Positions 3,086 through 33,326 of a DNA stretch of 36,273 nt are shown one piece after another. The notes beneath the pieces were generated by a model. It worked only from the letters and a program-made list of their open reading frames with translations. It made no database searches and was not told the origin of the DNA. The stretch lies in the NCBI GenBank assembly GCA_002269645.1, contig NIVC01004747.1:1-36273 (forward strand), written 5' to 3'. This stretch comes from Macrostomum lignano. Lineage: Eukaryota. Numbering within the stretch: the first letter of the stretch is position 1; every line of letters starts with the position of its first letter. A program made the translations under genes and the position numbers.

Positions 3086-3154
3086 ATTAGAACGTTATGG
3101 AAACTACAGTGGCTGCTCCTATTCAACTTCATCAATAGTCACTAATCCGCTCAC

Positions 3155-5344: not shown

Positions 5345-5400
5345 CTTGCATTATATATTTAAATCTGAAATTATCAGACGATCTAAAGAACTAAAAAAGG

Positions 5401-6771: not shown

Positions 6772-6844
6772 CTGGAGCAGCGGGTTTTATTGGAGAACGT
6801 TTATAAGGTTTATAAGGAGAAGCTCATACAAAATTATTGAGTCA

Positions 6845-7960
6845 TATAAGCATTGCCATTGAGTCATAACGCAATCATTGAGGTAGAGTCATACAGCAAT
6901 GATTGAGGTTGAGTCATACAGCAATCATTGAGGTTGAGTCATACAGCAATCATTGAGCTTGAGTCATACAGCAATCATTGAGGTTGAGTCATACAGCAGT
7001 AATTTTTTGGTAGGGTCATACAGTATTCACTGAGTCATACAGAAATCATGGTCATTGGGTCATACAGCATCTATTGAGTCACACAGCATCCATTGAGTCA
7101 CACAAAAATCATGGTCATTGGGTCATACAGCATCTATTGAGTAACACAAAAATCATGGTCATTGGGTCATACAGCATCTATTGAGTCACACAAAAATCAT
7201 GGTCATTGGGTCATACAGCATCTATTGAGTCACACAAAAATCATGGTCATTGGGTCATACAGCATCTATTGAGTCACACAGCATCCATTGAGTCACACAA
7301 AAATCATGGTCATTGGGTCATACAGCATCTATTGAGTCACACAAAAATCATGGTCATTGGGTCATACAGCATCTATTGAGTCACACAAAAATCATGGTCA
7401 TTGGGTCATACAGCATCCATTGAGTCACACAAAAATCATGGTCATTGGGTCATACAGCATCTATTGAGTCACACAAAAATCATGGTCATTGGGTCATACA
7501 GCATCTATTGAGTCACACGAAAATCATGGTCATTGGGTCATACAGCATCCATTGAGTCACACAAAAATCATGGTCATTGGGTCATACAGCATCCATTGAG
7601 TCACACAAAAATCATGGTCATTGGGTCATACAGCATCCATTGAGTCACACAAAAATCATGGTCATTGGGTCATACAGCATCTATTGAGTCACACAAAAAT
7701 CATGGTCATTGGGTCATACAGCATCTATTGAGTCACACAAAAATCATGGTCATTGGGTCATACAGCATCTATTGAGTCACACAAAATCATGGTCATTGGG
7801 TCATACAGCATCCATTGAGTCACACAAAAATCATGGTCATTGGGTCATACAGCATCCATTGGGTCACACAAAAATCATGGTCATTGGGTCATACAGCATC
7901 CATTGAGTCACACAAAAATCATGGTCATTGGGTCATACAGCATCTATCGAGTCATACAGA
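6845..7960. repeat. Intronic minisatellite: ~25-nt units grading into a 44-nt higher-order unit (TTGAGTCACACAAAAATCATGGTCA + TTGGGTCATACAGCATCTA)
   Basis: GGTCATTGGG at 7201 and 7245 gives a period of 44. Both subunits share TTG(A/G)GTCA(C/T)AC. Confidence 0.93.
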
Positions 7961-8046
7961 AACCATGGTAATTCGGTCATAACTCAATCATTGGCTTGCT
8001 GTCACTGGGTCAAACAGCAATAATTACAAACTATTATAACCCTCAC

Positions 8047-8655
8047 CTGATCCGCATTGATACTCTTAGTCACGGCGCTCAACTCAGCCTCAGTAAAGGT
8101 GACTTTCCCATACAGATCTTCAATTCGAGCTGCTCGACCGCTTCTAAACAGAAAAGCGCCCAAAGCGTGCAAGCAATAAACCAGCTTAGGCATATTTCTT
8201 CCATCGTAAATATCCGTAGTCTCAGGCCAATAATTCCTTGGCAATCCAATATGCTGCAGAGCCTTTAGAAAATGATTAATATTATCGGTATGCCGGAAGT
8301 CCAGTCCTCTAGCTAGAAACCGGTCCTGACGCGGATCGAATATAGATTTTATAGGCACTAGGCGAGGCGCGAACGCGTTAGCCAGCTTAGCTAATGCTAC
8401 GCCATTCTGCAGACAGGCTTCCAGCTGTTCGCCAGCTGGCGGCAGGCTCTCACTGATGCAGGCCTCTAGCCAGACTCGGGCCTCCTCTAGCCGGCACAGA
8501 TACTGATAAGCCAGCTGAGATCGGCGCCGTTCGTCCATCTCTTCGGCTGATAGGCGAACGCCTGCGGAAGACAGTTCGTTAGCTAACTGGGCGGTGGCAT
8601 TAGCATTAGCCGTGGCCATTGCCTGAGTAGCAGCCGATGCTTTTGGCGTGTCCAT
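8047..8655 (-). CDS. IQGAP: IQGAP-family scaffold protein, first coding exon (calponin-homology domain)
   Basis: EEMDERRRSQLAYQYLCRLEEARVWLEAC...LQNGVALAKL...FRHTDNINHFL...PETTDIYDGRNMPKLVYCLHAL...DLYGKVTFTEAE closely matches the IQGAP N-terminal CH region. ATG at 8655 with an in-frame TAA just upstream; donor CAG|GTGAGG at 8046. Confidence 0.93.
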
Positions 8656-8789: not shown

Positions 8790-9010
8790 GAGGTTGCAGC
8801 CTAGTGGTCAGAGCATCGGACTCGTGACTTGAAGGTCGGGGGTTCGATTCCAGATCCCGCTGGAAAAAAATTGTCCTTGAGCAAGACGCTCAACTCTGCA
8901 TTGCTTCAGTTCACCCAGCTGTAAAATTGGCACCAGGATTAGCTGGGGTACTTGGACTGAACTTAACAGCTACATACAGCCATCAGATGTGCGACACAAT
9001 AACTGTAGTA
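8790..9010 (+). mobile_element. tRNA-derived SINE with CORE (MIR-like) domain
   Basis: Box A-like CAGCCTAGTGG and box B GGTTCGATTCC, followed by TGTCCTTGAGCAAGACGCTCAAC...CTTCAGTTCACCCAGCTGTAAAATTGG, which resembles the MIR/CORE consensus. A second copy lies at 33062-33283. Confidence 0.8.
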
Positions 9011-11336: not shown

Positions 11337-12678
11337 TGTTTGGGCCAGGCGGGGAAGGCCTGCTATTTATTTGGTAATGTGCAAATAACGATTTGCCTAT
11401 ATCTATACACCAAGACAAACCAAGCATTTAGTAAGGCCAAGGGTAGGCCTACTTGCCATTTTAGCATATATATGAGGTCTTATACTTTTTCCCTCACCAG
11501 ACCTAGCATATGCTAATACATGATCCAAATCCAAACTATATAAAGGGAGCAATGTGTTTTAATAGCTTGGGAGATATCCAAAAATGCTAAAATTAGCTTT
11601 TTATATAGAGAAGTATGAAAACAATATCTAGTAAAATGTAGAATCTGTAGCAGAAACAGAAAAGAATAGCACAACAACATGCATAGGCCTAATCCACAGT
11701 AGAATGGTAAATTGCAGAATCAACTGCAAAATCTACTAGCTTGAAATAAAATACAAATAGCAAATTATATAAATATAGGAATCAAAATTTATCATTTTAA
11801 AGCTTTAAAGCTTTAGAGCATTTTAAAGCTATGTCTATAGCAGTGTAACCATATGAAAAGATATATAGACCTAAGAAATTTTAGTATGATTCTATATAAG
11901 ACAAACTGAACTAGAAATAGCAATATCTATTAGGCCTAGGTCTACTCAAAATAGTAAATATAGGTTCTCTTGTGAATAATAATATGGCTAATACTGAAGT
12001 GTTAAATTTTAAAGGCTTTATAGTTATAAGATGTGGAAAATGTGGAATTGGAATGGAATAGCTCAGTAAAAAGCAGAATCTATAGCAAAATGGTAAAATG
12101 CAGAATGAACTATGGATTCCACTAACTTTAAGTAAAATGCGAATGCAGGGTAGCTAAAGTGCAGTATGAATTAGGCCTATATATATAATCTTAGGCAATG
12201 CTTATCCCTAAGGTACCGTAGGAATAATTTCTGTCTTATTCCAATGGTACTGTGGGAATAATTTTCTGCTTATTGACATAGCACACTGATGACTTGCTGC
12301 TCCTTTCTTCTATATATATGCCTCACAGAATAATTTAGTTTGTAATTTCTGTAATTTCTGTCTTATTCCAATGGTACTATGGGATTAATTTTCTGCTTAT
12401 CCATATAGCACACTAATGAGTTGCTGCTCCTATCTTCTATACATAGGTTCTTGGACACTTCGTCATCTAACAACTTTATCATCTTGATGACGAAGTGACC
12501 ATGGTTTTTGGGTGCTTTGTCATATCAAATTTTTTTAGTAAATCTAGATGACGAAGTGACTAAATTTTGAGGACACTTTGTCATCCCAAGATTTAGCAAT
12601 GCTATAAATTGATATTTGATTGTTATTGTTATAAATTGTTACTCAATCAATTTAGTCTATAAAATATAGGATTGAATA

Positions 12679-13985: not shown

Positions 13986-15121
13986 TACACACTTAGAGAT
14001 TCAACTTGTCGCTATAATTGGCATTCAATGTACACAATATATATGTAGTTTGCATATGCATGCTTCAATGTACAAGTACATAAATGTAGATACTAATGCT
14101 CATTTTAATTTTACTTTATGTTTAACCTTGCCAAGCTCTAATAATTATTTTTGCTTCCTTGCTAAAGCCTAAAATTGGCATTATCACTTCTATAACCCAG
14201 GGGAGGCAACAAAGTATATGGCCATGGATTTCTCCTTGCTCTACCTGCAGGGACTTAACCAACCGTTGAATCATAACCCCATACAATCTAAGCTAGAGCC
14301 GCCAGCCGTCCAGCCGCAAGCCATCCAGTAGCAGGTAGAGCTGGTTGCAAAGCTTATCCTAGCTAAATTGTACACTATTGACGCAGGCCCCTTTGAAGAG
14401 CCACAATGGCTGCAAGAGTGTGAGCTCAACCTGCTAAGGCCTGAGCCCTATCAGTTTCTGACCGAGCTTCAAGGAGAGATGTTTCACCGCATTACAAGTG
14501 CCACAAATGGAGTTGCTGCACAAGGAAGCCAAGCTTGTGCCAGTTTAAGCCTCCCTGGTACGTGAGCAAGGAGCCCAAGAGTGTTAGTGCAAGTTGTGTT
14601 ACTAGCAGCTGCAGGAGTCTGCAGAGTGCAACTGGGCTAAATATTGAGCTGGTGAACTCTCCTTTCACAGCTTCCTGCTTAGCTGCTTTCACCTAGGTCA
14701 CATCCTTGGTTTGGCGGTCAAGTACAAAGCCATCAGTGAGTATATATTAAATGTATGTAAGTTCTTGCTTGATTTTAAAAATCAGCCATGGAATTATTCT
14801 GTTTAGAAAAAATCATACTTGCAATTGTGCAACTTTGAAATTTTACTTAGCTACATTTTTTGCTTAATACTAGCTGGTACTATTAATTCTGCAGTAATTT
14901 AAATGTATAGGTATTAATGCTATTCTCTTTGTGCTTTGTGAACTTTGTGATTTTTGTGCCTACATATAGCTACAAATTACAGTATTAAATGACTATCTTT
15001 ATGGGTCGTAACTCTGCCATTGTCTGATCCCAAGCCCAGAATGTGAAAGGAGGAAGGCGCCTAAATTTAGATACATATACATGTATAATGTTTAGTCTTT
15101 ATCTTTATATAGTTATATAGT

Positions 15122-15418
15122 CATACAAGCGCAACCTCCAAAATTTGGTCAGCCATGCAACTTAGTTTTAACAAAAAATGCGACGTAGTTTTTGGCCAAA
15201 AATGTGACTTACCTGTGAAAAAACCCTATAGCAAAATTAACGCAACTTTGGGTAAACGGCAGGAGTAACTATGACTGTCTTTTAAAGGGTTAAATGCCTT
15301 GTCATCTAATTTGTACTACGTCTGTAATCTTTGGGTGGGCATTTTTGCAACTTACCTTGGTTGGCTGCCAAATCGATCAACCGGATTGGCCAACTCAGCT
15401 GACTGTTGCGCATGTATG
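15122..15418 (+). mobile_element. MITE copy 1 (297 bp), 14-nt TIR CATAC(A)TGCGCAAC, 8-bp TSD; P- or hAT-type
   Basis: Perfect TSD TATATAGT at 15114-15121 and 15419-15426. Collinear with the copies at 16762 and 23540. Confidence 0.92.
15250..15311 (+). other. 28S rRNA-derived fragment inside MITE copy 1 (not an rRNA gene)
   Basis: GGGTAAACGGCAGGAGTAACTATGACTGTCTT matches the canonical eukaryotic 28S GGGTAAACGGCGGGAGTAACTATGACTCTCTT at 30/32; then AAATGCCTTGTCATCTAATT vs AAATGCCTCGTCATCTAATT. Confidence 0.88.
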
Positions 15419-15498
15419 TATATAGTTATGTAGTTGCATGTACCAGTATTCATGTTACATATAGCAAAGTTTTTTATACAAAAAGTGGATAACAAAGT

Positions 15499-16199
15499 GG
15501 GTCCATGAGAATTACCCACAGACAAATTGCCTGCCGAGATTTGCCCGCAGGAGATTTGCCAGTAGAGATTTGCCCACCAAGCTTTTCCCGTGGAGATTTG
15601 CCTGCAGTGCATTTTGCCTGTGAGCAAATTGCCCATGGAGATTTGCCTGCCAAGATTTACCCGCAGTGCAATTTGCCTGCAAGTGAATTGCCCGCAAGCG
15701 AATTGCCCGCCGAGTTTTTTCCCGCCGAGGTTTGCCCGCAATGCTTTTTTTCTGCAGCGCATTTAGCAACGCAGCAGATTTTGTCTGCATTGCCTTTCCA
15801 ATGCTTAGTACGTGTTAATCTCAATAGAGATTTACACGATCAAAACGTTTTGATAGTAACTATATATCAAATGCATATTTTTTTTGGAGGGAGGGGGCAA
15901 TGTAGACAGAATCTAGCTGCCAAATGTGCTGCAGGAAAAAAGCATTGAGGGCAAACCTTGGCGGGAAAAAACTTGGCGGGCAACTTGCTTGTGGGCAAAT
16001 TGCACTGCGGGCAAATCTTGGCAGACAATTCTCGGCGGGCAAATCTCCACGGGCAATTTGCTCACGGGCAAAATGCACTACGGGCAAATCTCCGCAGGAA
16101 AAGCTTGGCAGGCAAATCTCCATGGGCAAATCTCGGCAGGCAAATCTCCATGGGCAAATCTCGGCAGACAATTCATCTGTGGACATTTCTTGTGCTCCC
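15499..16199. mobile_element. Foldback / Mutator-like element (701 bp) with ~290-nt TIRs built from ~15-nt subrepeats
   Basis: GGG...CCC termini; perfect 9-bp TSD TAACAAAGT at 15490-15498 and 16200-16208. GAGATTTGCCCG-type units on the left are mirrored by GGGCAAATCTC on the right. Confidence 0.88.
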
Positions 16200-16761
16200 T
16201 AACAAAGTGTCTAGGGAGTAGATGATAAAGTGTCCACATTAGTTTTATGGATAACAAAGCAGTAAGATGACAGTGTCCAATAATAAGAGTGGATAATGAA
16301 GTGGTTAGATGACAAAGTGTCTAGGAACCTTATATATATACCTCACAGAATAATTTAGTTTATTACTTATGATTTGAGTACAGTAGGCCTATAACAAAAT
16401 AACTTTGTTTGATATTTTGTATTTATAGGCTTTTTATTTTGACGAACTTTTAGGAGCTTTAAAATCTTAGGAGAAGAAGGATTTATAGGAGCAACTATCT
16501 TGTCAGTGTGTCATGCAGATAAGAAGAAAATTATTCCCATGGCATATAAAGAAGATAAGAGCAGCTGTTTTGTCAGTGTGCCATGCAGATAAGCAGAAAA
16601 TTATTCCCTTATCTGATCTGCATAATACTGTTGGAATAAGACAAAAATTATTCCTATGGTACTATAGGGATAAGCACAGCCTAAGATTATATATCTTTAG
16701 GGTATCTATGCGAAATTCAATATCAATTTCCAGGTTTTTCCAGGTTAAAATAAGTAAAGCT

Positions 16762-17060
16762 CATACATGCGCAACCTCCAAAATTCGGTCGGCCGTGCGA
16801 CTTAGTTTTAACAAAAATGCGACATAGTTTTTGGCCAGAAATGCGACTTACATGTAAAAAAAACCCTAAAGCAAAATTAACGCAACTTTGGGTAAACGGC
16901 AGGAGTAACTATGACTGTCTTATTAACCCAAAATGCCTCGTCAGCTACTTAGTACTACTACTTAGGTATTTTTTTGGGTGGGCATTTTTGCGACTTCCTT
17001 GGTTGGTCACCAAATCAGTCGGCCGGATCGGCCGACTCGGCCGACTGTTGCGCATGTATG
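16762..17060 (+). mobile_element. MITE copy 2 (299 bp)
   Basis: Perfect 14-nt TIR CATACATGCGCAAC; perfect 8-bp TSD GTAAAGCT. Confidence 0.94.
16890..16953 (+). other. 28S rRNA-derived fragment inside MITE copy 2
   Basis: GGGTAAACGGCAGGAGTAACTATGACTGTCTT-attaaccca-AAATGCCTCGTCAGCTACTTAGT. Confidence 0.88.
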
Positions 17061-19747
17061 GTAAAGCTCCAGGTTGTTACCTGGTGGAGCTTTATAAAAT
17101 GAAATATATGTATGCAGCAATGTTTCTTGATTTAATGTTTCCTACTACGAACTATATATTATATATTTCATAGATTATTTAGATTAGGCCCTATTTATTT
17201 CTTGTATTATACTAACTGAAGAACAAAATTAAAAGTATAAAATAAAAGACTTTTGCTATAAATATACTACTTAATAAGAATATAACGATACAGGAGAGAT
17301 TGTATTTGTAACATACTGACATGGTAGGCCTAGCAACATTTTTTAATACCAATGTTTCTATCCCATCATATAGCATTATGGCATGCATTACTAAATTATA
17401 GTATATTTCCAGTTTCACATTACACAGATCATGGGAAGAATGATAATTCCAGGTTTCCCCTCCCAAATTGGTCCATTTCCAGGTTTTTTCTTTTGTTTTG
17501 GGGCGTTTCCAGGTTTTCCCAGTTTTTTGAATTTTAAGTTGCGGACACCCTGTTAATATATTATATTATAGGGTCTAGGCCTCTAGCCTAGGCTTTTATA
17601 TTAGAATTTTATTTTACTTCAGGTCTTGAAGTTGAGGCGACTAATCAAGCCTTCACAGAATCACAAAAAATCCTAACTTGAACAAAATTCGAGCGTGATC
17701 AGCGTGATCGAGCGTCACGTTTTGACTATTCGATTTAAAATCAATAATCTGAATGTTTTGAAATTCTGCGCTTTTGTTGTTAAAGCTTAGACTTCTAAAG
17801 ACCTTTTTATTTAAGACTATGCACCTTGTGAGTCTTATATTTTTTTACTGAAGCTTGACTGTATTTTGACAGAATTTGACAGAATTTTTTCAGACATTTT
17901 GTTATTTCTGACATTTTTTCAAACTGTAAAAACCAGCGCCAAGCATTGAATAAATTAAGCTGACTGACGCTCATCTGACAGTGAGTAATGGTGGGCCTTC
18001 CTTGTCTCCTCACCGATCTATTTTAAGAATGGAGTTAGGCTTATTCTGTATTCTGCTTGGCTGTTGTGTTACAATTACATAGTTTTAATTCTGCTGTTCA
18101 GGTTGTGTCAAAACTATCAATGTCGTTTTGACTCGTTTCTTTGCATTTCTTTGCATTTTTGGATTTCATAGTTTTAGGCCTAACTGCGAAGCCAAAAACT
18201 TTAACATTTTTACTTTTACTTAAGAAAAAATTGATTTGGAAATGGAAATTGGTCAAACATCAAATAAGCCTAGGGTCTATTAAAAAACAATGTTTTTTAA
18301 TTCTTTCAATGGGCCATTGTTAAATATTGAATTTTAAACTTTAAAGGCTTAATACAATAATATGTTAGGCCTAGGTCTACTATTGTACTAAGGTCTAGCC
18401 TAGTCTAACTTCTAAATTTGTTTCTTTTAAGTTTTTGTCATTAAATTTTGTGTACCTACCTTTTTATATAATATATTTTTATTGCGATTGTGTTATTGTT
18501 AGTAATTAGTTAGTAGGAGGGGCCTAGGCTAAAAAAATAAAGTAAAAAATTTTAACTTTTGATTTTTTATTCTACGCCCCTATCTAAAAGTAAAAATCAT
18601 CTTTGATTTTAATTAAAAATCTATTTGGATCTATTTCTATTTAGCATAGGCCCTGGTTTAAAAAAAATTGCTGATTATAAGCCTAGGCCCTAAAATTATA
18701 AAATGTGATTTGCAAATAAATTTTGTCTTGTCTTTTTGTATGCTAATAGAATAATGAACTAATCTTAAACTATTTGAATTTTTTTAATTTTGAATTTAGG
18801 AAGTCTTTTATCTTTGGTAAACCTATTATAACATTTTGAAATTAATAGTTGCTATTGAAGAAAAAGGTTTCTAAAATGGAAAATTTTTATAGACACATTT
18901 TTATTTGTTGCTATAATATATTATATTGTCATAGTTATATTGATAAAACAATTATATTATAAGCCTAATCAAATATAAAAACAGAATTCAAAATAAATCA
19001 AATGATAGTATTTTAAAATATGAATAATTAATTCACATATTTTGACATTAATTAAATGTTTTCTAAATAAGATTCTTAAGAACATTAAAAAGTATATAAA
19101 GTATACTAAATTAATTTTTGCTTATATATTATTCACTATTACTAGAGCCATTTCTATATGGCGAAATCCAAAAACGTGGGATAAAACGGTAAAACAAATC
19201 TGCGGACATTCAATGGAAAGTAGTGTATCTAAAAAAGGTTTTTGAAAGATAGATAGGTCTTTAGAAAATAGTTCTGGATAAAAACTATTGTTTTCATGTT
19301 TTATATTATTGAATAAATAAGAAAAAACCACAAAAAAGCATTTTGAAAGTCTGAGTTGACCGATTTGCAATTTTTTGTTTCACTTTTTTTCATTATTAAA
19401 CAATTAATTTTAAGACTTGTAGGCCTTAGAGAAGGCTAATTTTTTTACTACTTACAAAACAGAAAGTAATCTGTGTTTTATTTTTTATTCTATTCAAAAA
19501 GATTAAGTATTTCTAAGGATTTCAAAGTTTTTCTAAAACCATATAAACTTGCGAAACTTCATACTAATATAAAGTGCAAAGTTTGCCAGCAAACATCTTT
19601 TTCTAAAAGTAAATATATCGCTAATTCCTCGTTGCAAAATAATCTTTAAGTTGTTTTCTTTCATTTAAATATCAACTTGCATAGTATTAGTATTTGTAAT
19701 ATGCCTATATTTAGACTTAAAAATTTTGGGTAAAAAATGGTACCACA

Positions 19748-20280
19748 CAATGTGAACCCGGCATCCAAATCAGATGCTTACTGTATGCTCATTAAGCGAC
19801 GAAGAACAATGAAATTACACTAAAACATGTATCATTGCGGCGTGTATGCAGGAAAAAAGGAATTTTTCAAATCGTTTTAGTAGAAGCTGAGTAAAATGCA
19901 ATTTTCTAATCCTTATGGGAATTCCAATGTGTTACCCGGCTTCCAAATCAGATGCTTACTGTATGCTCATTAAGCAACGAAGAACAATGAAATTACACTA
20001 AAACATATATCATCGCGGCATGTATGCAGGAAAAAAAGAATTTTCCAAATCGTTTTAGTAGAAGCTGAGTAAAATGCAATTTTACAATCCTTATGAGAAT
20101 TCCCATGTGTTACCCGGCTTCCAAATCAGATGCTTACTGTATGCTCATTAAGCGACGAAGAACAATGAAATTACACTAAAACATGTATCATTGCGGTGTG
20201 TATGCAGGAAAAAAAGAATTTTCCAAATCGTTTTAGTAGAAGCTGAGTAAAATGCAATTTTCCGATTCTTACGGGAATTT
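19748..20280. repeat. Three tandem copies of a 177-178-nt unit
   Basis: Units start at 19748, 19925 and 20103 and are highly similar (CCAAATCAGATGCTTACTGTATGCTCATTAAGC...). Confidence 0.93.
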
Positions 20281-20955
20281 GTATGTTTAAATAATAAACT
20301 TACGTTGAATACAATTTATTGCAAACAAACTCTACAAAATACACGTTGTCAAGAGTAACGAAAGTGATAAACAAATAAACCCTTGAATATAATGTTAAAT
20401 ATGTTGTAGAATTATAGAGTGTAACATTATAAGATAGTTAAAGTTAATAAAATACATTATTATAGCTTTTCTATCATTTTCATTAGACTCATTTTAGGTC
20501 GTAATTAAACTTACCGTTTTAACAAATCATTTTATTAAAAATAAAGCTATACAAAAATAATTTGTGCTTTAATAGACTTTTTTACCTTTTAAAAACTTGA
20601 ATAAATTTATTTTATAGCTTTATTGCTTTCAAATTGCCAAAAAACGAATTTTCATAAAACTTGCCCCCGATTTTTGGATTTCACCATATATAGTATACTA
20701 TATTAGAAAAATGGCATTTTTCTTTTAGTTTCATGTTGGACATGTTGCCATTTGTTTATAATTCTATGTATATCTTTGGGTTTTAATTATCATAATTACA
20801 AATTTATCTAAGCAAAAGTCTAAATATTAATATCATAGGGCTTCTTATATTCTTATGATACATACATGCGCAACTTCTGAAATTACGCTGGCTGTGTGAC
20901 TTAGTTTTTGATAAAAAATGCAACTTACCTATGAAAGAGCCAAGCAAAAACTTTA

Positions 20956-21027
20956 GGTAAACGGCAGGAGTAACTATGACCATATTTTTAAAGCTAAATG
21001 CCTCGCCAGCTAATTAGTGCTGCGTGC
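20956..21027 (+). other. 28S rRNA-derived fragment inside the long copy
   Basis: GGTAAACGGCAGGAGTAACTATGAC-catattttta aagct-AAATGCCTCGCCAGCTAATTAGTG. Confidence 0.85.
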
Positions 21028-21445
21028 AGATTCCGCGTTTTTATAACAGCTAATCAGTATGTCATCTAGTGGCGGCATGAAGCAATTAGTAAATTGTCAG
21101 TACAGTGTAGTGAGCACACTACAAAAGTCATGATTCATGAATGTCCAGAAGTAAGTGAAGTAAATACAGTGTGACCTATAGCTCAAGAACGATTTGCTAG
21201 ACGATTTGGCATTGAAGATGAGAGCCCTGATTCAGATGGCTCATCAGATGCGGAATACGAATCCAGTAGAGATACAAGCTGTGAAAACCCACAGATTTTT
21301 AAACCACTGAATTCTAATTCCCGGAACTATTTTTGCATAGATTCTAAATTTGAAGTCATGCTCAAACAAAAACTTGTTAACAGTTAGGAAAAAGGCAAAG
21401 ATGGGAGTAATGCATGTTAAACTAAGATTTGAGGCCTTTGCAAAT

Positions 21446-22115
21446 TCTCTCCATTCCTCAATCTTCTCATCCTCTTTCTTTTCTCTCTCATCCCTTATCC
21501 CTTCTCTCTTTCCTCTCCTCTCTCCTCTCCTCTCTTTCCTCTCCTCTCCTATCTCTTCTGTCTCCTCTACATTCTTATCTCTCCTCTTGTCTCTCTCCAT
21601 TCCACTCTACTCTCTCATCTTATCTTCCCTCTCGTCTCTCTCCACTCTACTCTCTCATCTTATCTCTCCTCTCTTTTCTACTCTCTCATCTCTCCTCTCT
21701 TCACTCTCCTCTCATCTCCTCTATCCTCTCTTCTCTCATCTACTCTCTCCTCTTTCTTCTTTCCTCTCTTCTGATCTCATCCATCATCTTTTCTTTCCTC
21801 TTTCCTCTCATCTCCTCTTCTCTCTCATCTCTTTTTCCTCCCTCAGCTTTTCTCTCCTCTTCTATCTTTTCTACCATCGCATCACTCGCCTCTCCTCGTT
21901 TGCTTATCTCTAATCTTCTATTCCCTCTACTTTGAAGTAAGAAAATATGCACATATTTTTGTTGAAGATAAGAGGAGAGAAGAGGGCATTGAGGAGAAAG
22001 GGTAGAGAGAAAAGGGGAGAAGAGAGGAGAGTAAAAATGAGAGGAGAGAGAAGAGGGAAAAGGGGGGAGAGAGAGAAGAGGGGAGGCAAGGTAGAGAAGA
22101 AGAGAGAGATGAGAG
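21446..22115. repeat. CT-rich low-complexity tract followed by a GA-rich tract (opposite polarity)
   Basis: Polypyrimidine ~21446-21935, polypurine ~21968-22115. Confidence 0.85.
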
Positions 22116-22389
22116 TTGAAGAGACACCAACCTTGCTACAAGTAGTTAGTAAGTTAGGAAGTTTCAAAGAACCCAAGGGGCGAGGGCCAGATAGAGGGGC
22201 TTCGCGAGCCGGAGTTTGCCAACCCCTGCTCCAGAGTTTAAGAAATCAATGGGAAACTGTTGACGCGGGCTTCTGATTTCAAAGATCTTGTCTGTTGTTG
22301 AAGGCTTCTATTCTGTTTTTGCTCTCCTGCCACACTTGCACCTACTACCCCCTGATTGCCTCTGATTGTGACTTACTTCCCTCTTATTG

Positions 22390-22745
22390 CGACTTAGTTG
22401 CTTCTTTTTGCGACTTACCTAATCCTTTTGCAACTTACCTAACCCTTTTGCGACTTACCTAATCCTTTTTGCGACTTAATCCTTTTTGCGACTTACCTAA
22501 TCCTTTTTGCGACTTACCTAATCCTTTTGCAACTTACCTAACCCTTTTGCGACTTACCTAATCCTTTTGCGACTTAGCTGATCCTTTTGCAACTTACCTG
22601 ATTATTTTTGCAACTTACCTGATCCTTTTTGGGACTTACCTAATCCTTTTTGAGACTTACCTAATCCTTTTTGCGACTTACCTAATCCTTTTTGGGACTT
22701 ACCTAATCCTTTTTGTGACTTACCTGATTATTTTTACAACTTAGT
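22390..22745. repeat. 20-21-nt minisatellite GCGACTTACCTAATCCTTTT(T)
   Basis: Direct inspection. The GC(G/A)ACTTA core is the same motif repeated in the MITE subterminal regions. Confidence 0.9.
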
Positions 22746-23539
22746 TTGCTTCTTTTGCGAATTGTTTTTCTTTTGCTTCACCATTTTCCCTGAACTGCTC
22801 TTTCTTTCACTTTCCTCTTGCCTTTCTTGGTTCTTGTGTTTTTCTGTTTTTGGTTGACTCAATTTTGCGACTTACCCCTGGTCAGCCACGATTTACGGTG
22901 GCCAGATCGGCCAGGTCGGCCAGCAGTTGCGCATGTATGTTATGATATCTTATTGCTTAGTCACCAAAATTGTTGTAGGGGTTATTTCTATCCCTAATAT
23001 AATCTTTACAAACTGCTACCAAGTTGTAACAGGGGTTAATTCTATCCTGTTGTTACCAAATTTTGTACTAGGCCTAGGGTTATTTCTTACTACTTGATTT
23101 TATTGGTTATTTCCTATACTTGTATATTTACTGATAGCATATGTACTTTTATTGGTAGCATATATACTTTTAGCCTGAGCAGTCTAATGGCACTATATTT
23201 CTAATTCTATATATCCCCCAGTTTTCTCCTCTAAGAGGGTTTCTCTCAGTCCAGGCATTACTGGGATCAGAGGGTCATAGCTTTTTTGCTGGGTATTCTA
23301 CCCTAGGCCTAAGGTAGGTTTCTTAGACTCTAAGTCTAGATCTCTCTATTACCCTGTGGTAGGATTTCTGCCTTTTAAAGGCAAATTCTCCTGTTCTGAA
23401 TCTGGATGTCTTGTTCTTTGAAAATAATTTGAATTCTCCCAGTCTTGGGGTTTCTAGTGCTTCTAAATAACTAAGTCAAAAAGTATTGATCAAGCTTCAA
23501 TTCGAGATACTAAAATAGACTATAAACCCAAAGCAAGTG

Positions 23540-23836
23540 CACACATGCGCAACAGTCGGCCGAGTCGGCCGATCCGGCCGACCGATTTGGCGGCCAACCA
23601 AGAAAGTCGCAAAAATGCCTACCCGAAAAAATAACAAAGTAGTAGTACTAAGTAGCTGACGAGGCATTTTGGCGTTATAAGACAGTCATAGTTACTCCTG
23701 CCGTTTACCCAAAGTTGCGTTAATTTTGTTTTAGGTTTTTTTGCATGTAAATCGCATTTTTGGCCAAAAACTATGTCGCATTTTTGTTAAAACTAAGTCG
23801 CATGGCCGACCGAATTTCGGAGGTTGCGCATGTATG
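23540..23836 (-). mobile_element. MITE copy 4 (297 bp), inverted orientation
   Basis: TIRs CACACATGCGCAAC / GTTGCGCATGTATG; perfect 8-bp TSD AGCAAGTG. Confidence 0.93.
23648..23710 (-). other. 28S rRNA-derived fragment inside MITE copy 4
   Basis: Reverse complement reads GGGTAAACGGCAGGAGTAACTATGACTGTCTT-ataacgcca-AAATGCCTCGTCAGCTACTTAGT. Confidence 0.88.
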
Positions 23837-24209
23837 AGCAAGTGGCAAGTTGTTTCTTCTCTTGCTAACAGCTCGTGTATTTATATTCCTTTTCAGTAAG
23901 TTTTAAAACAAATAAAATTTTGTAATATTTATAATATTTACAATATTTTTGATATTATACTCATTAAAACAAAATAGCCTAATTTCAAATGCAATACTTT
24001 CTAGGATAATGACAAAGCCTATTTCATTAAGAAGACAAAAGTATTCTTAGAATTTTTTTGTGCACAAAAGCAAAATTTTGGCATAATCTGGTTAAAGCCA
24101 AAGATTCAAATTATCCAATGTGCCAATTATATTAGTAAAGGCAATCTGAACTTGGGTTTTTATTGCACCTATGCTTTTATTGCTTATATATAGGATTGTT
24201 GTATACATG

Positions 24210-24925
24210 CATAGGTCACTGGTCAGATTGTCATATTCTATTTCGTCATATTGGATGACAAAGTGATTGTTACAGGTTTGTACTAAACACTGGGCTTAAT
24301 GCCCTGAATATGTGCCGTAGTACCTTACCTTTGGCCTTCTTTTGCCAATGTCTGCTTGGCACCATTTAAACTTTATATTTATTTTACTTATTTCCAAGCG
24401 GTTTGCCTTTAGTTAGGCTCTTGTGCTCAATACAGGCAAATGAAATAGTCTATGATCATATTTCAGTTAAAAATAAACTTTAATCTGCTCGGGCAAAAGC
24501 CAGCCTGCAGCAGTAATCAAAAGCAAAGTAGCTTGAAAAATAATATGACAAAGTGACCAAATATTTATTTATGCTGGATACTTCGTCATCAACCAACGCA
24601 ATCTGTGTGGGATTTGAGTTTGTGTAAACTATTTTTTGTTTAATAACAATAAGTTGTGGCAAGCAGAATCGATCGACAGGTTTTATCAGATGACATATTA
24701 GATGACATTAGATGACAAAATGACTGGGATCATTAGGATTCCAAGATATGTTTGATTGTTACATTAATTCACTTGAAGTTGGAACTAATATGATCAGTAG
24801 ATGACGAAATGACTCTCTTCAGGTAGTGCATGTTAATTAAGATGACAAAGTGACCATAGTTAAGGTGAGCACCCCAGACACCCAGATGACAAAATGACAG
24901 ATGACGAAATGACTAGGAACCCATG
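24210..24925. mobile_element. TIR element C, same family as element A
   Basis: Imperfect TIRs CATAGGTCACTGGTCA / reverse complement CATGGGTTCCTAGTCA; many GATGAC(A/G)AA(A/G)TG subrepeats; CATG flanks both ends (possible 4-bp TSD). Confidence 0.6.
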
Positions 24926-25294
24926 CATGCATAGCACTTGGTTAAAAATCTCTATAGTCCATCTGTCTTTAATTTAACTTCACAAGTTAAATGCTTTAAC
25001 TATTAGTGTATATTATTATATAAATTCATACATAACATCTGGCTAATTTGGCTAAATTTTTCTGGTTTTATTTTTCACAAGTGACTAAAATTAATGATTG
25101 TCTAAGGCAACACCATATGCAAAAGTACATTGTCATCTCATAAATCTATTTTTATTCTTTAGCCCTGAATAAGTTTACAGTTAATTTCCATCCTTTGTAA
25201 ACTTGAATAAGCAGCAAACTCCTGCCATAGCACCTGCATACCCTAAGACAATCCAATGCTTGCATGTTGTTAACCAGTCAGCCATAGTCAATTG

Positions 25295-25642
25295 ATGCCG
25301 CCAAAAAATCAGAAGCCCGACCCGAAAAAGTCGGCGCCAGCTAAGAAGAAAGATGCCGGATCCAGCGGCGGCAAGGCTAAGAAAAAGAAGTGGTCCAAAG
25401 GAAAGGTTCGCGACAAGCTCAATAATATGTGCCTGTTTGATCAGGCCACATATGACAAGCTCTACAAGGAGGTGCCAGCCTACAAGCTGATCACTCCGTC
25501 TGTGGTTAGCGAGCGATTGAAAATCCGGGTGAGCCTGGCCAGAGCTTCCCTGCTCGAGCTGGAGCGCAAAGGGCTTATTAAGCCCGTGTCTAAGCACCAT
25601 GCCCAGTTCATCTACACCAAGACTACTAAGACCGAGGCCTGA
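25295..25642 (+). CDS. RPS25: 40S ribosomal protein S25 (eS25)
   Basis: MPPK...[72 protein letters not shown] is the canonical eS25 sequence; uninterrupted 115-aa ORF. Confidence 0.97.
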
Positions 25643-25727
25643 GCATCTTAAAGATAGGTTGAGTTAAACATCTGGACTGAATTATTGTTAAGGAAATTTG
25701 TCTGTATTGAATTGGAATCTATGATTA

Positions 25728-25733
25728 AATAAA
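25728..25733 (+). terminator. Putative polyadenylation signal of RPS25
   Basis: AATAAA 86 nt after the stop codon, followed by GT/T-rich sequence. Confidence 0.6.
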
Positions 25734-25901
25734 ATGTAAAAGCACTTGATTGTGGCTGTTGCTTAAGTGGAATTCTGTGACTTTTTCATGTCTGCTTCCT
25801 TTTATTTTATATAAAAATAATGTATAGAATAGACCCACTCACTAAGCTTGGATCTCAGTATCTTTCAGATTTTTATAATTCTGGGCTTGTACTAATTGCT
25901 T

Positions 25902-26570
25902 CAGATCCTCAGGTAGGGTGACAAGTACTGACAACTATTCTCCCAGATTCTCAGGTAGGGTGGCAGCTATTCTCCCAGATCCTCAGGTAAGGTGGCAGCT
26001 ATTCTCCCAGATCCTCAGGTAGGGTGACAACTATTCTCCCAGATCCTCAGGTAGGATGACAACTATTCTCCCAGATCCTCAGGTAGGGTGGCAGCTAGTC
26101 TCCCAGATCCTCAGGTAGGGAGACAACTATTCTCCCAGATCCTCAGTTAGGGTGGCAGCTATTCTCCCAGATTCTCAGGTAGGGTGACAACTATTCTCCC
26201 AGATCCTTAGGTAGGGTGGCAGCTATTCTCCCAGATCCTCAGTTAGGGTGGCAGCTATTCTCCCAGATTCTCAGGTAGGGTGACAACTATTCTCCCAGAT
26301 CCTTAGGTAGGGTGGCAGCTATTCTCCCAGATCCTCAGTTAGGGTGACAAATATTCTCCCAGATCCTTAGGTAGGGTGACAAATATTCTCCCAGATCCTC
26401 AGGTAGAGGGACAACTATTCTCTCAGATCCTCAGGTAGAGGGACAACTATTCTCCCAGATCCTCAGGTAGAGGGACAACTATTCTCCCAGATCCTCAGGT
26501 AGAGGGACAACTATTCTCCCATATTCCCAGGTAGGGTGACATTTACATATTCGCCGAAATCCTCAGGTCC
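25902..26570. repeat. 32-nt minisatellite CTATTCTCCCAGATCCTCAGGTAGGGTGACAA, about 20 copies
   Basis: ATTCTCCC at 26001 and 26033 gives a period of 32. Confidence 0.95.
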
Positions 26571-26728
26571 CAGTAATTACGTAGATTATTCTGTTTATCA
26601 CTGACGTGCCTAATAATTGAAAGGATTTTATTAATTGTTTTTACTAATTGAAGACTCTTGACAAATTAAACTGACTCCTCTACTTGATAAATTTATGATC
26701 AGCCAATTGAGCTCACACTCGCACAGTC

Positions 26729-26995
26729 ATGGCCTACATGCACCTCAGCATTACAATACCAATAATCTTCTGTATTCTAGTGGGCCAATTTAGTAACCTG
26801 GCATCGGCCGTCACACTGAAACAGGGCCAAGACGATCCTAGCGTGTACATTCATTACGATACTAGCCTGTTTCATATTGGCCTGCACTGCGGCGTCTCCT
26901 TGATGATTTGCTACGCTATACTGTGCTCAATGTGGCTAATAGTACAAGGCGTTATCTACGTCAGTGGGACTAAACGAATCCAGCGTCATAGCTAA
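26729..26995 (+). CDS. Hypothetical small membrane protein (88 aa; signal peptide plus one TM helix)
   Basis: ATG-to-TAG ORF in a locally GC-richer island. Hydrophobic N-terminus ending ...LASA|VTL, second hydrophobic stretch GVSLMICYAILCSMWLIVQGVIYV, basic tail KRIQRHS. No family recognised. Confidence 0.5.
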   Translation: MAYMHLSITIPIIFCILVGQFSNLASAVTLKQGQDDPSVYIHYDTSLFHIGLHCGVSLMICYAILCSMWLIVQGVIYVSGTKRIQRHS

Positions 26996-27845
26996 CTTTG
27001 AGTATCTGGAGATTTAAATAAACAGTAATATAACTTATTGCTAAGAACTTTATGTTAGCAACGCGTATATTGACTGCCCGACAAAAAATTAATGTGCCAT
27101 ACTTTGTGCAGTGCTCAGAAGTGCTCAGAAAAGAAACACTCTCAGCTCAGTAGTAAAACTGGTCTGACTCTGGCACGAGTTCGCATTCATTTTATAGGGC
27201 TTGTGTACGAAAAATTGCACCAGGGAAATCATTCCTCAATATTATAATTTGTTGTAAATAGATACGCAGATGCTTTAGCGTTTAAATTATTAATATTGGG
27301 CAGAATTAAAATTATTAATAAAATTTTTATCCGTAGGACACTGGCTATTTTTTGTTGGGCAAGAAATCCTTGAAAAATAGGAGTGCTTAGATCATTTCTA
27401 GGATTTTTCCTTTTCTTATAATTAGTTTTTTATTTCTACAAGAAGCAAAGCGACTATATCAATCTGCATTCAGGCTTGTTTGATTATCGCTCTGCTTCCA
27501 TTTAGTGTATTATACACTCGCGTTTTATAGTCAGTACTAGTAGTAGTGCGTATTTAAAATTTTTTTATTTTCTAGTACGTGTCCTAGCTAACCTCTGTTC
27601 CTTAGTGCGTTCTAGTCTTTTTACTCTAGTGCGAACTTTTGAATCAGATTTTTATGATTAGTGCGAATAATTTTTGTTCTGATTTCACGTGTTTTTTTAC
27701 CATTTTTCCTTCCAAAGTATACAACGCGCGTTCTTTTCTACTTGTAGGTTTATAATAAATAGTAGTATAACTTGAGTGTCTCACTCTTCGAAGGTCGCTC
27801 AGTCGGTATCACATAGACCTAATTTTCATATCACTATAAGTTGCA

Positions 27846-29272
27846 AGCATCAAAGCATCACTTCCTTATCAGCATCACTTCCTCATCAGCATCACTTCAC
27901 TACCAGAATCACTTCACCATCAGCATCACTTGCCCATCAGCATCACTTGCCCATCAGCATCACTTCCTCATCAGTATCACAATTCCTCATCAGCATCACT
28001 TCACTACCAGAATCACTTCACCATCAGCATCACTTGCCCATCAGCATCACAATTCCTCATCAGTATCACAATTCCTCATCAGCATCACAATTCCTCATCA
28101 GCATCACAATTCCTCATCAGTATCACAATTCCTCATCAGCATCACAATTCCTCATCAGTATCACAATTCCTCATCAGCATCACTTGCCCATCAGCATCAC
28201 AATTCCTCATCAGTATCACAATTCCTCATCAGCATCACAATTCCTCATCAGTATCACAATTCCTCATCAGCATCACTTGCCCATCAGCATCACAATTCCT
28301 CATCAGTATCACAATTCCTCATCAGCATCACAATTCCTCATCAGTATCACAATTCCTCATCAGCATCACTTGCCCATCAGCATCACAATTCCTCATCAGC
28401 ATCACTTGCCCATCAGCATCACTTTCCCATCAGCATCACAATTCCTCATCAGTATCACAATTCCTCATCAGCATCACAATTCCTCATCAGTATCACAATT
28501 CCTCATCAGCATCACTTGCCCATCAGCATCACAATTCCTCATCAGCATCACTTCCTCATCAGCATCACTTGCCCATCAGCATCACTTCCTCATCAGCATC
28601 AATTCCTCATCAGCATCACTTCCTCATCAGCATCACTTCCTCATCAGCATCACTTCCTCATCAGTATCACAATTCCTCATCAGCATCACAATTCCTCATC
28701 AGTATCACAATTCCTCATCAGCATCACTTGCCCATCAGCATCACAATTCCTCATCAGTATCACAATTCCTCATCAGCATCACAATTCCTCATCAGTATCA
28801 CAATTCCTCATCAGCATCACTTGCCCATCAGCATCACAATTCCTCATCAGTATCACAATTCCTCATCAGCATCACTTGCCCATCAGCATCACAATTCCTC
28901 ATCAGTATCACAATTCCTCATCAGCATCACAATTCCTCATCAGCATCACTTGCCCATCAGCATCACTTTCCCATCAGCATCACAATTCCTCATCAGTATC
29001 ACAATTCCTCATCAGCATCATCACAGTATTCCTCATCAGCATCACTTGCCCATCAGCATCACAATTCCTCATCAGCATCACTTCCTCATCAGCATCACTT
29101 GCCCATCAGCATCACTTCCTCATCAGCATCAATTCCTCATCAGCATCACTTCCTCATCAGCATCACTTCCTCATCAGCATCACTTCCTCATCAGTATCAC
29201 AATTCCTCATCAGCATCAATTCCTCATCAGCATCAATTCCTCATCAGCATCACTTGCCCGTCAGCATCATTT
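27846..29272. repeat. Minisatellite of mixed 17- and 19-nt units (CCTCATCAG(C/T)ATCACAATT; GCCCATCAGCATCACTT)
   Basis: Direct inspection; unit lengths are not multiples of 3. Confidence 0.96.
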
Positions 29273-29657
29273 CCCTTAGCTACAAAACACTGCTGCTTAT
29301 CGGTCTGAATTTTCTATATTAAACATCGTCGCAGTGAGATACGAGTGCTCGTATTTTGGTCTTAAAAATTAGGTCTTGTGATGAGAATATTTACTGTATT
29401 AACTGCCTTTTGCGACAACAATATTTAGCTTTTGTTTCTCACTTTTTATGGCTATACTTTAGTTATTAGCTTATTTAATTAAATATATAGATATAGAATT
29501 TATGGAGCTTCTCCTTGACAGAGTTTGCCGCAATAAAAAAATCCATTTATATGTGAATCTTTGCGACTAACTGCTTGAAAGTAACAAGTCAGTTGCTAAT
29601 ATTTAAGTGAACTTAAAGATCGCCATTCACCGCTAATCTTGAACGTAGACTCGTCAA

Positions 29658-31498
29658 TCACGTCGAAGAAGACGGCAAAGAAGTTCCTTCTGCTCGTTGA
29701 CGCCTGCGCAGACGCTGCTCCGGTCTCTGCCATCCGGTCTCCAATTTAATTTGCTCGTAGTTGCATTGCGTAGCGCATTCTCGGAACTCTCGTTGGTCAT
29801 CAGATGCAACAGCCGTTGGTTGCATCGTCGCAGGCGCTGTCGATTTCTCCGCTTCCTCATGCCAGCCAGCAAAGTCGTCAAACACGGTGTCTTGTCGCAT
29901 CAGCGCCGAGCTGCGCACTGAGCCGCTTGTTGTTGACGACTTGCGTGCCGATTGTTGCGGCTGCTGCTGAACTGCTGAAACTTGTGATGGATGCAGAATT
30001 TGAAGTGCTCGATGATCTTGTGTGAGCTCATCATATACTTGCGAATTCTGGTGCACGGGTGACTCTTTCTGAATTATTGGTGGTGGCTGTGTCCAAGGTG
30101 GAATATCAACATTCGGCTCTCGTTGGTTTAGAGGCTTCCAGAACTCTAGATCATGTTGACCTTCTGATGTTTTTCTAACATCATCTGGCTCTTGTTGAAT
30201 TTGAGGAGGATTCCTATTTTTTGTCTCTTTATGATATATTTGATCTTCGGGCGGCTTCCAAATTTCCGGCTCTTGTTGATCTTGAGCTTGAGGAGGCCTC
30301 CAAATTTCCGGCTCTTGTTGACCTTGAGCTTGAGGAGGCCTCAAAATTTCCGACTCTTGATCTTGAGCTTGAGGAGGCCTCCAAATTTCCGGCTCTTGTT
30401 GACCTTGAGCTTGAGGAGGCCTCAAAATTTCCGACTCTTGTTGATCTTGAGCTTGAGGAGGCCTCCAAATTTCCGGCTCTTGTTGATCTTGAGCTTGGGG
30501 AGGTCTCCAAATTTCCGGCTCTTGTTGACCTCGAGCTTGAGGAGGCCTCCAAAGTTCCGGCTCTTGTTGACCTTGAGCTTGAGGAGGCCTCCAAATTTCC
30601 GGCTCTTGTTGACCTTGAGCTTGAGGAGGCCTCAAAATTTCCGACTCTTGATCTTGAGCTTGAGGAGGCCTCCAAATTTCCGGCTCTTGTTGACCTTGAG
30701 CTTGAGGAGGCCTCAAAATTTCCGACTCTTGTTGATCTTGAGCTTGAGGAGGCCTCCAAATTTCCGGCTCTTGTTGATCTTGAGCTTGGGGAGGTCTCCA
30801 AATTTCCGGCTCTTGTTGACCTTGAGCTTGAGGAGGCCTCCAAAGTTCCGGCTCTTGTTGACCTTGAGCTTGAGGAGGCCTCAAAATTTCCGGCTCTTGT
30901 TGATCTTGAGCTTGAAGAGGCCTCCAAATTTCCGGCTCTTGTTGATCTTGAGCTTGGGGAGGTCTCCAAATTTCCGGCTCTTGTTGATCTTGAGCTTGGG
31001 GAGGTCTCCAAATTTCCGGCTCTTGTTGACCTTGAGCTTGAGGAGGCCTCCGAATTTCTGGCTCTTGTTGACCTCGAGCTTGAGGAGGCCTAAAAATTTC
31101 CGGCTCTTGTTGACCTTGAGGTGGCTTCCAAATCTTTGGTTTCTGGTGAATCTGTGTAACTATGCAAATCTCTGGCTGTTTTTTATTCTCTAGTGCTCGC
31201 TGAGAGTGTTCAGGCTGCTGCTGCTGTTGCTGCTCTTGCACCTGAACATCGAGTTTGTGACCGCAGCTTACTTCTACTGGTACGAAGTCAATTTTACGCA
31301 GTCTCTCCTGTTCTTGAAACACAGCAGAGGCATCTGATAAGCAGAAACTGGTAGTGGCAGCTTCACTTGGTACGGGGATGGAGAGCGTCGAACCACCTGC
31401 ACAAGCCCCATAGTGCGTCGCTGCTGCTGTGGCTGCGATGAATTTGTGCCGGCCTGTGCCGACAAAGTCTTGTTCCTACTCTGTGACAGCATACGGTC
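29658..31498 (-). CDS. CH/filamin-repeat protein, last exon (low-complexity tail with 14-aa repeats); needs one frame change between ~31322 and 31470
   Basis: Phase-0 acceptor tatccaacag|GAC (31498). The entry frame stops at 31274, but an overlapping frame stays open to 29658 (554+ aa) and includes the PPQAQGQQEPEIWR repeats. Confidence 0.6.
30255..31135 (-). repeat. Coding tandem repeat, 42-nt unit (some 39 nt), about 21 copies
   Basis: Plus-strand unit CCAAATTTCCGGCTCTTGTTGA(T/C)CTTGAGCTTGAGGAGGCCT; all length variants are multiples of 3. Confidence 0.93.
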
Positions 31499-31614
31499 CT
31501 GTTGGATATAGTGAATGAAAATCAGATCTGATAAGTTTTAGGCCCAGTAGTAAACTCCCGACTCCTAACTCCACCTTTCTTATTGTCGCTATAAAATTTA
31601 TATAATAAACTCAC

Positions 31615-32039
31615 ATTTGCTACTCCCGTCGGACCGAACTGCTTCCATTGCTTCTGCTGCTGTTGCTTTCGCCCCGTCGACGTTGACCCTGATGACTTAG
31701 AATTCGACGTCGTAGACGATAGTGACGGCTCAGTGAGACATTGCTGCCGGCGGATTCTCGGAGGGCAGCCAGAAACAGTCATGCTGCAGCTGCTTTTGCC
31801 ATAGCCAAAGTCGCTAGTATCGTCGCGGCCCCAGGACAGCAGGGCGAGTTTGCTGCGCAGTTGGCGCAGCTTGTCAATATTAGCGCTGCCGAGGCCTTCG
31901 TCTAACAAACGGAGATCGTTAAGCTGCGAGAGCGGATCCGCTGAGCGGGCGTACACGGTGAACGGACTGCCGTTGACGTGGTTGCCCTGGTAGCAAACAG
32001 ACACCTCGTGAACGCCGTCGGTGCTGGGTACCACACGAT
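31615..32039 (-). CDS. CH/filamin-repeat protein exon (C-terminal half of the filamin Ig repeat plus S/Q-rich region); apparent 1-nt deletion near 32026-32028
   Basis: Acceptor cttacctcaag|ATC; GVHEVSVCYQGNHVNGSPFTV is the filamin-repeat signature; donor AAT|GTGAGT (31614). Confidence 0.78.
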
Positions 32040-32252
32040 CTTGAGGTAAGCAGGGGAAACAAGAAAAATATCAGTTTGAAGTCTTGCACTCTATTTCCAC
32101 CAAAGCCTTTCGAATCAGTCGCTTATTATGAATGTACGAGCTATTTACCAAATTTTAGCAAATTATAGAACCAATCAATATCATTTGCTGTCAATAATTG
32201 CAAGCTGAAGAGTTGGAGAATTATTTTTCACTTGTAAGGTAAAGACGCTTAC

Positions 32253-32867: not shown

Positions 32868-33061
32868 CTTTAGGAATGGAAACAGGATCAAATTTTTAAA
32901 GGACGGTCTTCACTCGAACTGTGTTTAGGTTTTATTGAAAAGCCGCATCTTTGGCTGCTGTAAGGAGGTGCCAAAACCTTTTAAAAAGGGCGTGACATAC
33001 TTTTGCCTGTGTCTTTAAACATTATAATTCAAATAAATTGTTTACACCCGCTCTAATTGGG

Positions 33062-33283: not shown

Positions 33284-33326
33284 TATAAAACAAAATATGT
33301 GCAAATAATTGAATCTGCTCCCACAC

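Follow-up and report, generated by a model that had tools for sequence, protein, structure and literature searches.

Transposable elements are known to acquire pieces of ribosomal DNA (rDNA) by modular reshuffling, and documented examples include the intergenic-spacer repeats of Pokey, SINE28 and Cassandra (PMC10946416). In this article, we describe a family of four elements, E1 to E4, that share a 14-nt terminal inverted repeat (TIR) and that each contain a decayed piece of the 28S rRNA gene. They lie on contig NIVC01004747.1 of assembly GCA_002269645.1 (Mlig_3_7), from the neopolyploid free-living flatworm Macrostomum lignano. The whole contig, 36,273 bp, is the stretch that was analyzed, and we refer to it as ‘the window’.

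The closest known system, in spirit, is Pokey, a piggyBac family of Daphnia that includes mPok. Like the Macrostomum family, it is a family of DNA transposons with MITEs (miniature inverted-repeat transposable elements), and it carries rDNA-derived sequence in its internal 5′ region (PMC3849761, PMC10946416). The two differ in other respects. Pokey makes TTAA duplications, whereas those of the Macrostomum family are 8 bp long. The cargo of Pokey consists of 200-bp intergenic-spacer repeats that evolve in concert with rDNA, whereas the Macrostomum family carries a short stretch of 28S coding sequence that has decayed. And Pokey inserts into 28S genes, whereas none of the four Macrostomum copies (0/4) is in rDNA. 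Mammalian SINE28 is likewise a mobile element whose body includes 28S-derived sequence (PMC10946416), but it is retrotransposed and has no inverted termini, whereas the Macrostomum family is of the cut-and-paste, TIR kind with duplications of fixed length. The 2024 review's table of rDNA-derived modules in transposable elements, the scope of our comparison, contains no TIR element with a 28S coding fragment (PMC10946416), in agreement with a first-pass annotation of this DNA, which knew of no described MITE with such a cargo. With the family, a TIR transposon that carries part of the 28S coding sequence joins a short list, in which Pokey (intergenic spacer) is the only DNA transposon and SINE28 the only entry for 28S. 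Capture of gene fragments by non-autonomous DNA transposons is itself common, both as transduplication of the Pack-MULE type and as filler DNA in deletion derivatives of hAT and P elements. As in such captures, a short host sequence lies between transposon ends and has been spread by transposition; it was captured once, and there is no evidence that it has a function. Here, though, the piece comes from the universally conserved core of rRNA, is subterminal rather than central and is the best-conserved internal block of the element. We regard the family as a real but fairly ordinary case of transposon capture of host DNA, and not as evidence of an rDNA-targeting system.

The elements read CATACATGCGCAAC...GTTGCGCATGTATG from end to end. 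When up to two mismatches are allowed, the 14-nt terminus CATACATGCGCAAC has eight matches in the window, against 0.2 expected, and these are exactly the eight element ends; six match in full, and the other two differ at one position each. E1 (15122–15418, plus strand; 297 nt) has one of the latter as its left terminus (CATACAAGCGCAAC), and is flanked by the duplication TATATAGT at 15114–15121 and 15419–15426. E2 (16762–17060, plus strand; 299 nt) has perfect termini and the duplication GTAAAGCT at 16754–16761 and 17061–17068. E3 (20861–22939, plus strand; 2,079 nt) has the same 14-nt termini and the duplication TTATGATA at 20853–20860 and 22940–22947. E4 (23540–23836; 297 nt) is in the reverse orientation, on the minus strand, with the duplication AGCAAGTG at 23532–23539 and 23837–23844. 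The duplications, read directly from the flanks, are all perfect, all 8 bp long and different for each element. E1, E2 and E4 are MITE copies; E3 is too long to be called a MITE and is a non-autonomous relative. Identity is 93.3% between E2 and E4, and 84% between E1 and either of these. E3 is ~74% identical to the short copies over the left 139 nt and ~73% over the right 93 nt. A BLASTN comparison of the elements with the window revealed no other copies there, whole or fragmentary.

Evidence of movement comes from a second contig. The protein of the ribosomal protein gene RPS25 (25295–25642) is matched on exactly two contigs of GCA_002269645.1, the window itself and NIVC01001500.1. The latter (locus L002) is a near-identical sister contig, allelic or homeologous, and is collinear with positions 19097–35498 of the window. 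E3 is present in both. E4 is missing from the sister contig: the two alignment blocks that surround it overlap by exactly 8 nt, a single AGCAAGTG at L002 4489–4496, which is the exact empty site. Where the sequence beside E4 is unique, the contigs agree at 100% of positions in the 600 nt upstream and at 98.8% in the 664 nt downstream. Because its flanks are so similar (98.8–100%), the E4 insertion is very young, and the family moved very recently; therefore, a working transposase was recently present. The short copies have, in all, the properties of MITEs: TIRs at both ends, duplications of fixed length but varying sequence, small size with no transposase gene, and an insertion polymorphism with an empty site. 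The first-pass annotation had described four elements with a common 14-nt TIR, each with its own perfect 8-bp target-site duplication, and had taken them to be independent transposition events; the eight matched ends, the four distinct duplications and the empty site bear this out. The youth of E4 has a further consequence. Since E4 differs from E2 by 6.7%, most of the differences between copies must have arisen between their source copies, rather than after insertion. The alignment of the sister contigs is, in addition, offset within a 21-nt tandem array in E3 (window 22371–23539 against L002 3327–4496), and the length of this array apparently differs between the two.

The 28S-derived segment spans 15234–15314 (plus strand) in E1, where the clear core begins at 15251 and the first 17 nt are a weaker BLASTN extension; 16874–16953 (plus strand) in E2, with the core beginning at 16891; 20956–21024 (plus strand) in E3, corresponding to positions ~2245–2313 of the Rfam model LSU_rRNA_eukarya and keeping TAATTAGTG..GCG at its 3′ end; and 23647–23727 (minus strand) in E4. 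At its heart is the 25-mer GGTAAACGGCAGGAGTAACTATGAC, which occurs once per element (at 23685–23709 in E4) and nowhere else in the window, where none is expected by chance; it starts 96 nt from the left end in E3, and 128–130 nt from it in E1, E2 and E4. In local alignment to the LSU_rRNA_eukarya consensus (positions ~2243–2313), the segments score 41–42, compared to 8.2 ± 1.3 for dinucleotide shuffles (z ~26). Genuine 28S contigs are matched by BLASTN over 82 nt at 80–82% identity (E ~1e-15). The first-pass annotation had seen a helix 69–71 segment in each element and had asked how it aligns to 28S; set against the Rfam consensus and metagenome 28S sequences, it matches far beyond chance. By these measures, an internal segment that matches rDNA is common to all the copies, and a decayed piece of the 28S rRNA gene, some 65–80 nt long, is present in all four elements. 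All copies also have in common the junction at its left, AACTTTRGGTAAACGG, and 2 nt inserted after GAC. The piece was therefore acquired once, before the lineages of E3 and the MITEs split, much as the first-pass annotation had proposed in placing a single capture ahead of amplification.

The likeness to 28S might nevertheless be due to chance, or the ‘elements’ might be dispersed rDNA pseudogene fragments or assembly artefacts, rather than transposons. What speaks for this is that covariance-model E-values for LSU_rRNA_eukarya on the elements alone are weak, only ~1, and that Rfam finds no LSU match when run on the whole window. Because the piece is short and its structure decayed, the model is expected to perform weakly, and we therefore relied on statistics at the level of sequence. 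These (z ~26, and a BLASTN E of ~1e-15 to real 28S) are not those of chance. Fragments and artefacts, for their part, would have to account for the perfect termini of every copy (two ends with one mismatch), for the separate 8-bp duplications, for the clean empty site in the second contig and for the presence of E3 in both contigs. We consider this explanation refuted.

The captured region is that of helix 69 to helix 71 in domain IV of 28S rRNA, and the CTCTTAAGGTAGCC within it is the cut site of R2 and of I-PpoI. The TTAA used by Pokey in 28S also falls within the captured stretch (TTAAGGTAGCCAAATG). The downstream bases that Pokey prefers, including AAATG, match this 28S site (PMC3849761). 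All copies have GGCAGG where GGCGGG is usual, and the first-pass annotation had regarded this as a change, common to all copies, that implies a single capture. The exact 25-mer, which includes the variant, occurs in 42 metagenome contigs, most of them plainly genuine 28S genes, and 30 of the 42 continue GACTCTTTTAAGG rather than GACTCTCTTAAGG. According to the structure line of Rfam, the G that is altered in GGCGGG>GGCAGG pairs with the C of a compensating C>T, the two changes together converting a G–C pair into an A–U pair in the stem of helix 69. GGCAGG is thus a natural 28S variant with a compensating change, and therefore need not be a mutation made after capture. E1 reads GAC[TG]TCTTTTAA[A]GG, a sequence that can be derived from the A–U type in fewer changes than from the canonical one. 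The G-to-A difference was thus probably inherited from the source gene.

When metagenomes were scanned with the 25-mer, no relatives of the MITEs and no matching termini came to light, and likeness to the elements ended with the 28S part. The scan did, in passing, turn up several unusual contigs. In nine of these (L003, L005, L007, L013, L015, L018, L028, L040 and L043), the 28S gene is interrupted at, or beside, the hot spot. The interruptions come after TAAGG, TTAAG, TCTCTTA or GAC, and are consistent with R2-like elements or introns in eukaryotes; in L028 and L043, a duplicated TGACTCTCTTA is found at the junction. Two other contigs have the region outside its normal rDNA context. L033 (135–159, minus strand) has ~45 nt of it amid GC-rich CCGA repeats, and L027 (2062–2086, plus strand) has a tandem repeat, the unit of which is a piece of 28S ending in TAAGGTA. 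Neither is similar to the flatworm element beyond the 28S part.

What the elements do not carry is the target site itself. The first-pass annotation had described each of them as bearing the R2/I-PpoI/Pokey site. Between GAC and AAATGCC, however, each copy differs (E1 TGTCTTTTAAAGGGTT, E2 TGTCTTATTAACCCA, E4 TGTCTTATAACGCCA and E3 CATATTTTTAAAGCT), and the core, CTCTTAAGGTAGCC, is degenerate beyond recognition in all four; only its flanks survive. The core is destroyed in every copy, and therefore no intact target site is carried. Nor do the positions of the elements suggest a preference for rDNA. All four lie between an IQGAP-like gene and RPS25, in ordinary intergenic DNA that is AT-rich, and the 28S-like piece is internal and continuous, not a flank into which an element inserted. 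Their target duplications (TATATAGT, GTAAAGCT, TTATGATA and AGCAAGTG) have no obvious likeness to the 28S segment. Whether copies sit in rDNA had been suggested as a check; of the four in the window, none does. Nothing, in short, links the elements to rDNA targeting, and the suggestions that the segment acts as a decoy, is a source of small RNAs or is a relic of an rDNA-associated partner find no support in the available data.

The way in which the core has decayed raises a different question. The segment could mimic an rDNA target and be cut again and again at the AAGG/TAGCC core by an endonuclease specific to rDNA (R2 or a homing enzyme); inexact repair would then leave scars that differ from lineage to lineage, while the flanking recognition sequences persist. 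The lesion in GGTAGCC does differ in this manner, different original bases being kept in E1 (GGGTT), E2 (CCC), E4 (CGCC) and E3 (AGCT). The core varies in 8/16 columns, and only one 16-nt window of the MITE is more variable; E2 and E4 have three to four differences within ~8 nt there, against 6.7% overall. Flatworms have R2 elements, according to a survey (PMC13188248). The most variable window of all, however, is a different one, immediately 3′ of the 28S-like part; very few copies are available, and the core can be aligned in more than one way. In those parts of the literature that we covered, no R2 is documented for Macrostomum, and the supplement of the R2 survey does not show the upstream 28S flank for flatworms. 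Present copies have no cleavable core, moreover, and slippage in AT-rich sequence accounts for the pattern equally well. We think it very improbable that these are endonuclease scars. Were they so, thousands of genomic copies would amount to a natural archive of cuts made by R2-type enzymes outside rDNA.

The interpretation that we favor, with a probability of about 0.72, is that the elements are a non-autonomous, cut-and-paste (class II, TIR) family with a passively captured piece of 28S. A transposase encoded elsewhere in the genome would move the elements in trans, recognizing the 14-nt termini and, probably, directional subterminal repeats of the sequence GCRACTTA, and integration would take place at a staggered cut of 8 bp. 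The ancestor common to the two types of element acquired ~70–80 nt of a 28S gene within its left subterminal region. Most likely, this piece entered as filler DNA, copied during the repair of an excision gap, and it would have been carried passively ever since.

Not everything agrees with a cargo that is purely passive. In the alignment of E1, E2 and E4, 58 of 302 columns vary, and they do so unevenly. The longest stretch without variation, a run of 50 nt (CAAAATTAACGCAACTTTGGGTAAACGGCAGGAGTAACTATGACTGTCTT; permutation p = 0.0005), is wholly inside the 28S-derived segment, and the 25-mer is identical in E3 too, though the arms of E3 are only ~74% identical to the short copies. The differences between copies being mostly differences between source copies, where selection for mobility can act, these observations, from a sample of only four copies, weigh against passive carriage and hint that the block is constrained.

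One explanation is that the 5′ part of the segment now acts in cis, in the manner of a subterminal binding site for transposase or for a host factor, and is kept by selection on mobile copies. The 50-nt run is found among copies that are otherwise 84–93% identical, and the 25-mer has remained unchanged in the diverged lineage of E3. The copies also agree in the first 17 nt of the run, which have diverged from 28S, and so it would be the element's own sequence that is conserved, not its likeness to 28S. Because E4 is very young and differences mostly reflect divergence of different source copies, an invariant block may mark a cis requirement. The block lies 113–193 nt from the left end, within the range over which sequence past the TIR is required in hAT elements (e.g. 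Tol2 and Hermes), whose cis requirements reach 150–200 bp inward from each end (PMC10368747). Set against this are the small number of sequences (three or four) and the choice of the region after the data had been seen. The mutation rate may vary along the element, too, the variable stretches being AT-rich and liable to slip; no clear copy of GCRACTTA is found in the block; and no transposase is known for the family. We judge a role in cis to be unlikely, if worth bearing in mind. The broader proposition, that the helix-69 block is not inert, but is either co-opted in cis for mobility or still attracts an rDNA-specific endonuclease that scars the AAGG/TAGCC core in each lineage, strikes us as doubtful. 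With four copies, a region chosen post hoc and AT-rich sequence prone to slippage, the invariant block and the scarred core are to be treated as leads, and we retain passive capture as the preferred account.

No autonomous partner was found; the window contains no transposase, and none of the reading frames of the elements has a Pfam domain. One frame of E2 is fully open; it has no protein homologues, and it returned no matches when used as a ‘protein’ query for the recovery of more copies. The only long open stretch of E3 (70 codons, 21175–21384), considered as a possible relic of a transposase, has no word-sharing relative, no Pfam domain and no match among 1.84 billion representatives. The subterminal motif GCRACTTA occurs 22 times in the window, compared to 2.6 expected, and 20 of the 22 are inside the four elements. 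There, it has one orientation relative to the element, and it is more frequent on the left side than on the right. Like other TIR elements, E2 folds into a long hairpin (z = −5.7).

The elements may be of the hAT, P or another superfamily with 8-bp duplications. Transposons of the P superfamily make 8-bp duplications, as a few other superfamilies do, and have termini that start with CA. The 8-bp duplications and the CATAC start of the Macrostomum elements agree with this, and their features are compatible with P, but not specifically. The termini of hAT elements have the form YARNG, which CATAC does not fit. Like hAT elements (e.g. Hermes, Tol2 and Ac/Ds), the family has 8-bp duplications, short TIRs and multiple short, directional subterminal repeats, with more of them at one end than at the other, but its duplications depart from the hAT target preference, nTnnnnAn (PMC10368747). 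None of the four has both T2 and A7 on either strand, which is weak evidence with n = 4. No hAT transposase, which would have a BED finger, a DDE core and a hAT dimerisation domain, has been linked to the family; a P transposase would have a THAP domain. Of the earlier designation ‘P- or hAT-type’, therefore, the 8-bp duplication, its only basis, stands, while CATAC and the four duplications fall outside the hAT patterns.

A family of DNA transposons has thus been mobile very recently in M. lignano, which is described as the only flatworm with stable transgenesis (PMC8717057); an endogenous, active transposase with known ends could be useful there. For those who annotate this genome, dispersed copies of a 25-nt stretch of rRNA that is perfectly conserved will be labeled as rRNA fragments, and they can draw multi-mapping reads of rRNA-derived small RNAs. 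Beyond these points, the elements are ordinary MITEs.

The interior of E3 consists partly of repeats. An array of 17.7 copies of a 21-nt unit, CTTTTTGCGACTTACCTAATC, occupies 22383–22743 (plus strand), and each unit has a GCRACTTA. Between 21465 and 22082 (plus strand), a low-complexity CT-rich tract (21465–21832) and an AG-rich tract (21971–22082) form an imperfect, non-coding inverted repeat. A match to MIR7533 was rejected as spurious, since it stems from this low-complexity inverted repeat, and one to mir-980 was dismissed as weak noise.

An IQGAP-like exon with a CH domain is present at 8002–8655 on the minus strand, and E1 and E2 are 6.5–8.4 kb upstream of it. Used as a query for further sister loci of E1 and E2, this exon returned only matches that are 60% identical or less, belonging to other animals or to metagenome and run assemblies, and no close paralogue in M. 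lignano. Upstream of RPS25 lie E3, at a distance of 2.4 kb, and E4, at 1.46 kb. The coding sequence for ribosomal protein S25 is one open reading frame without interruption (ORF; 25295–25642, plus strand, in the window and 5942–6289 in L002), and the protein is identical on both sister contigs.

Other repeats are plentiful in the window. Tandem arrays of short period are unusually dense, with units of 17–44 nt in 13–46 copies; they occur at 1027–3094, 4198–4785, 5343–6502, 6823–8093, 25801–26637, 27808–29252, 30200–31117 and 35312–36070, and several are within, or adjoin, IQGAP-like and filamin-like genes. At least one of the arrays, at 29658–31322 on the minus strand, is an in-frame repeat of the PPQAQGQQEPEIWR type inside a long ORF. 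Two pairs of inverted dispersed repeats, 8872–8954 with 33162–33244 (83 nt, 87%) and 12181–12254 with 16621–16694 (74 nt, 86%), each probably represent another interspersed repeat family. Sixty nucleotides upstream of E1, at 15005–15061 (plus strand), is a sub-threshold match to the twister-P1 ribozyme (RF03160; E = 0.016, 29.5 bits versus the gathering score of 67.2). The conserved stretches UCCCAAGCCC and AAAGGAGG are present, but one hairpin is missing; the match occurs as a single copy in the window and folds no better than shuffled sequences. Finally, a large foldback at 15499–16199, between E1 and E2, is built of 14-nt repeats of the GGGCAAATCTC type, with arms of up to 108 nt that are 87% complementary, and is possibly another non-autonomous element.

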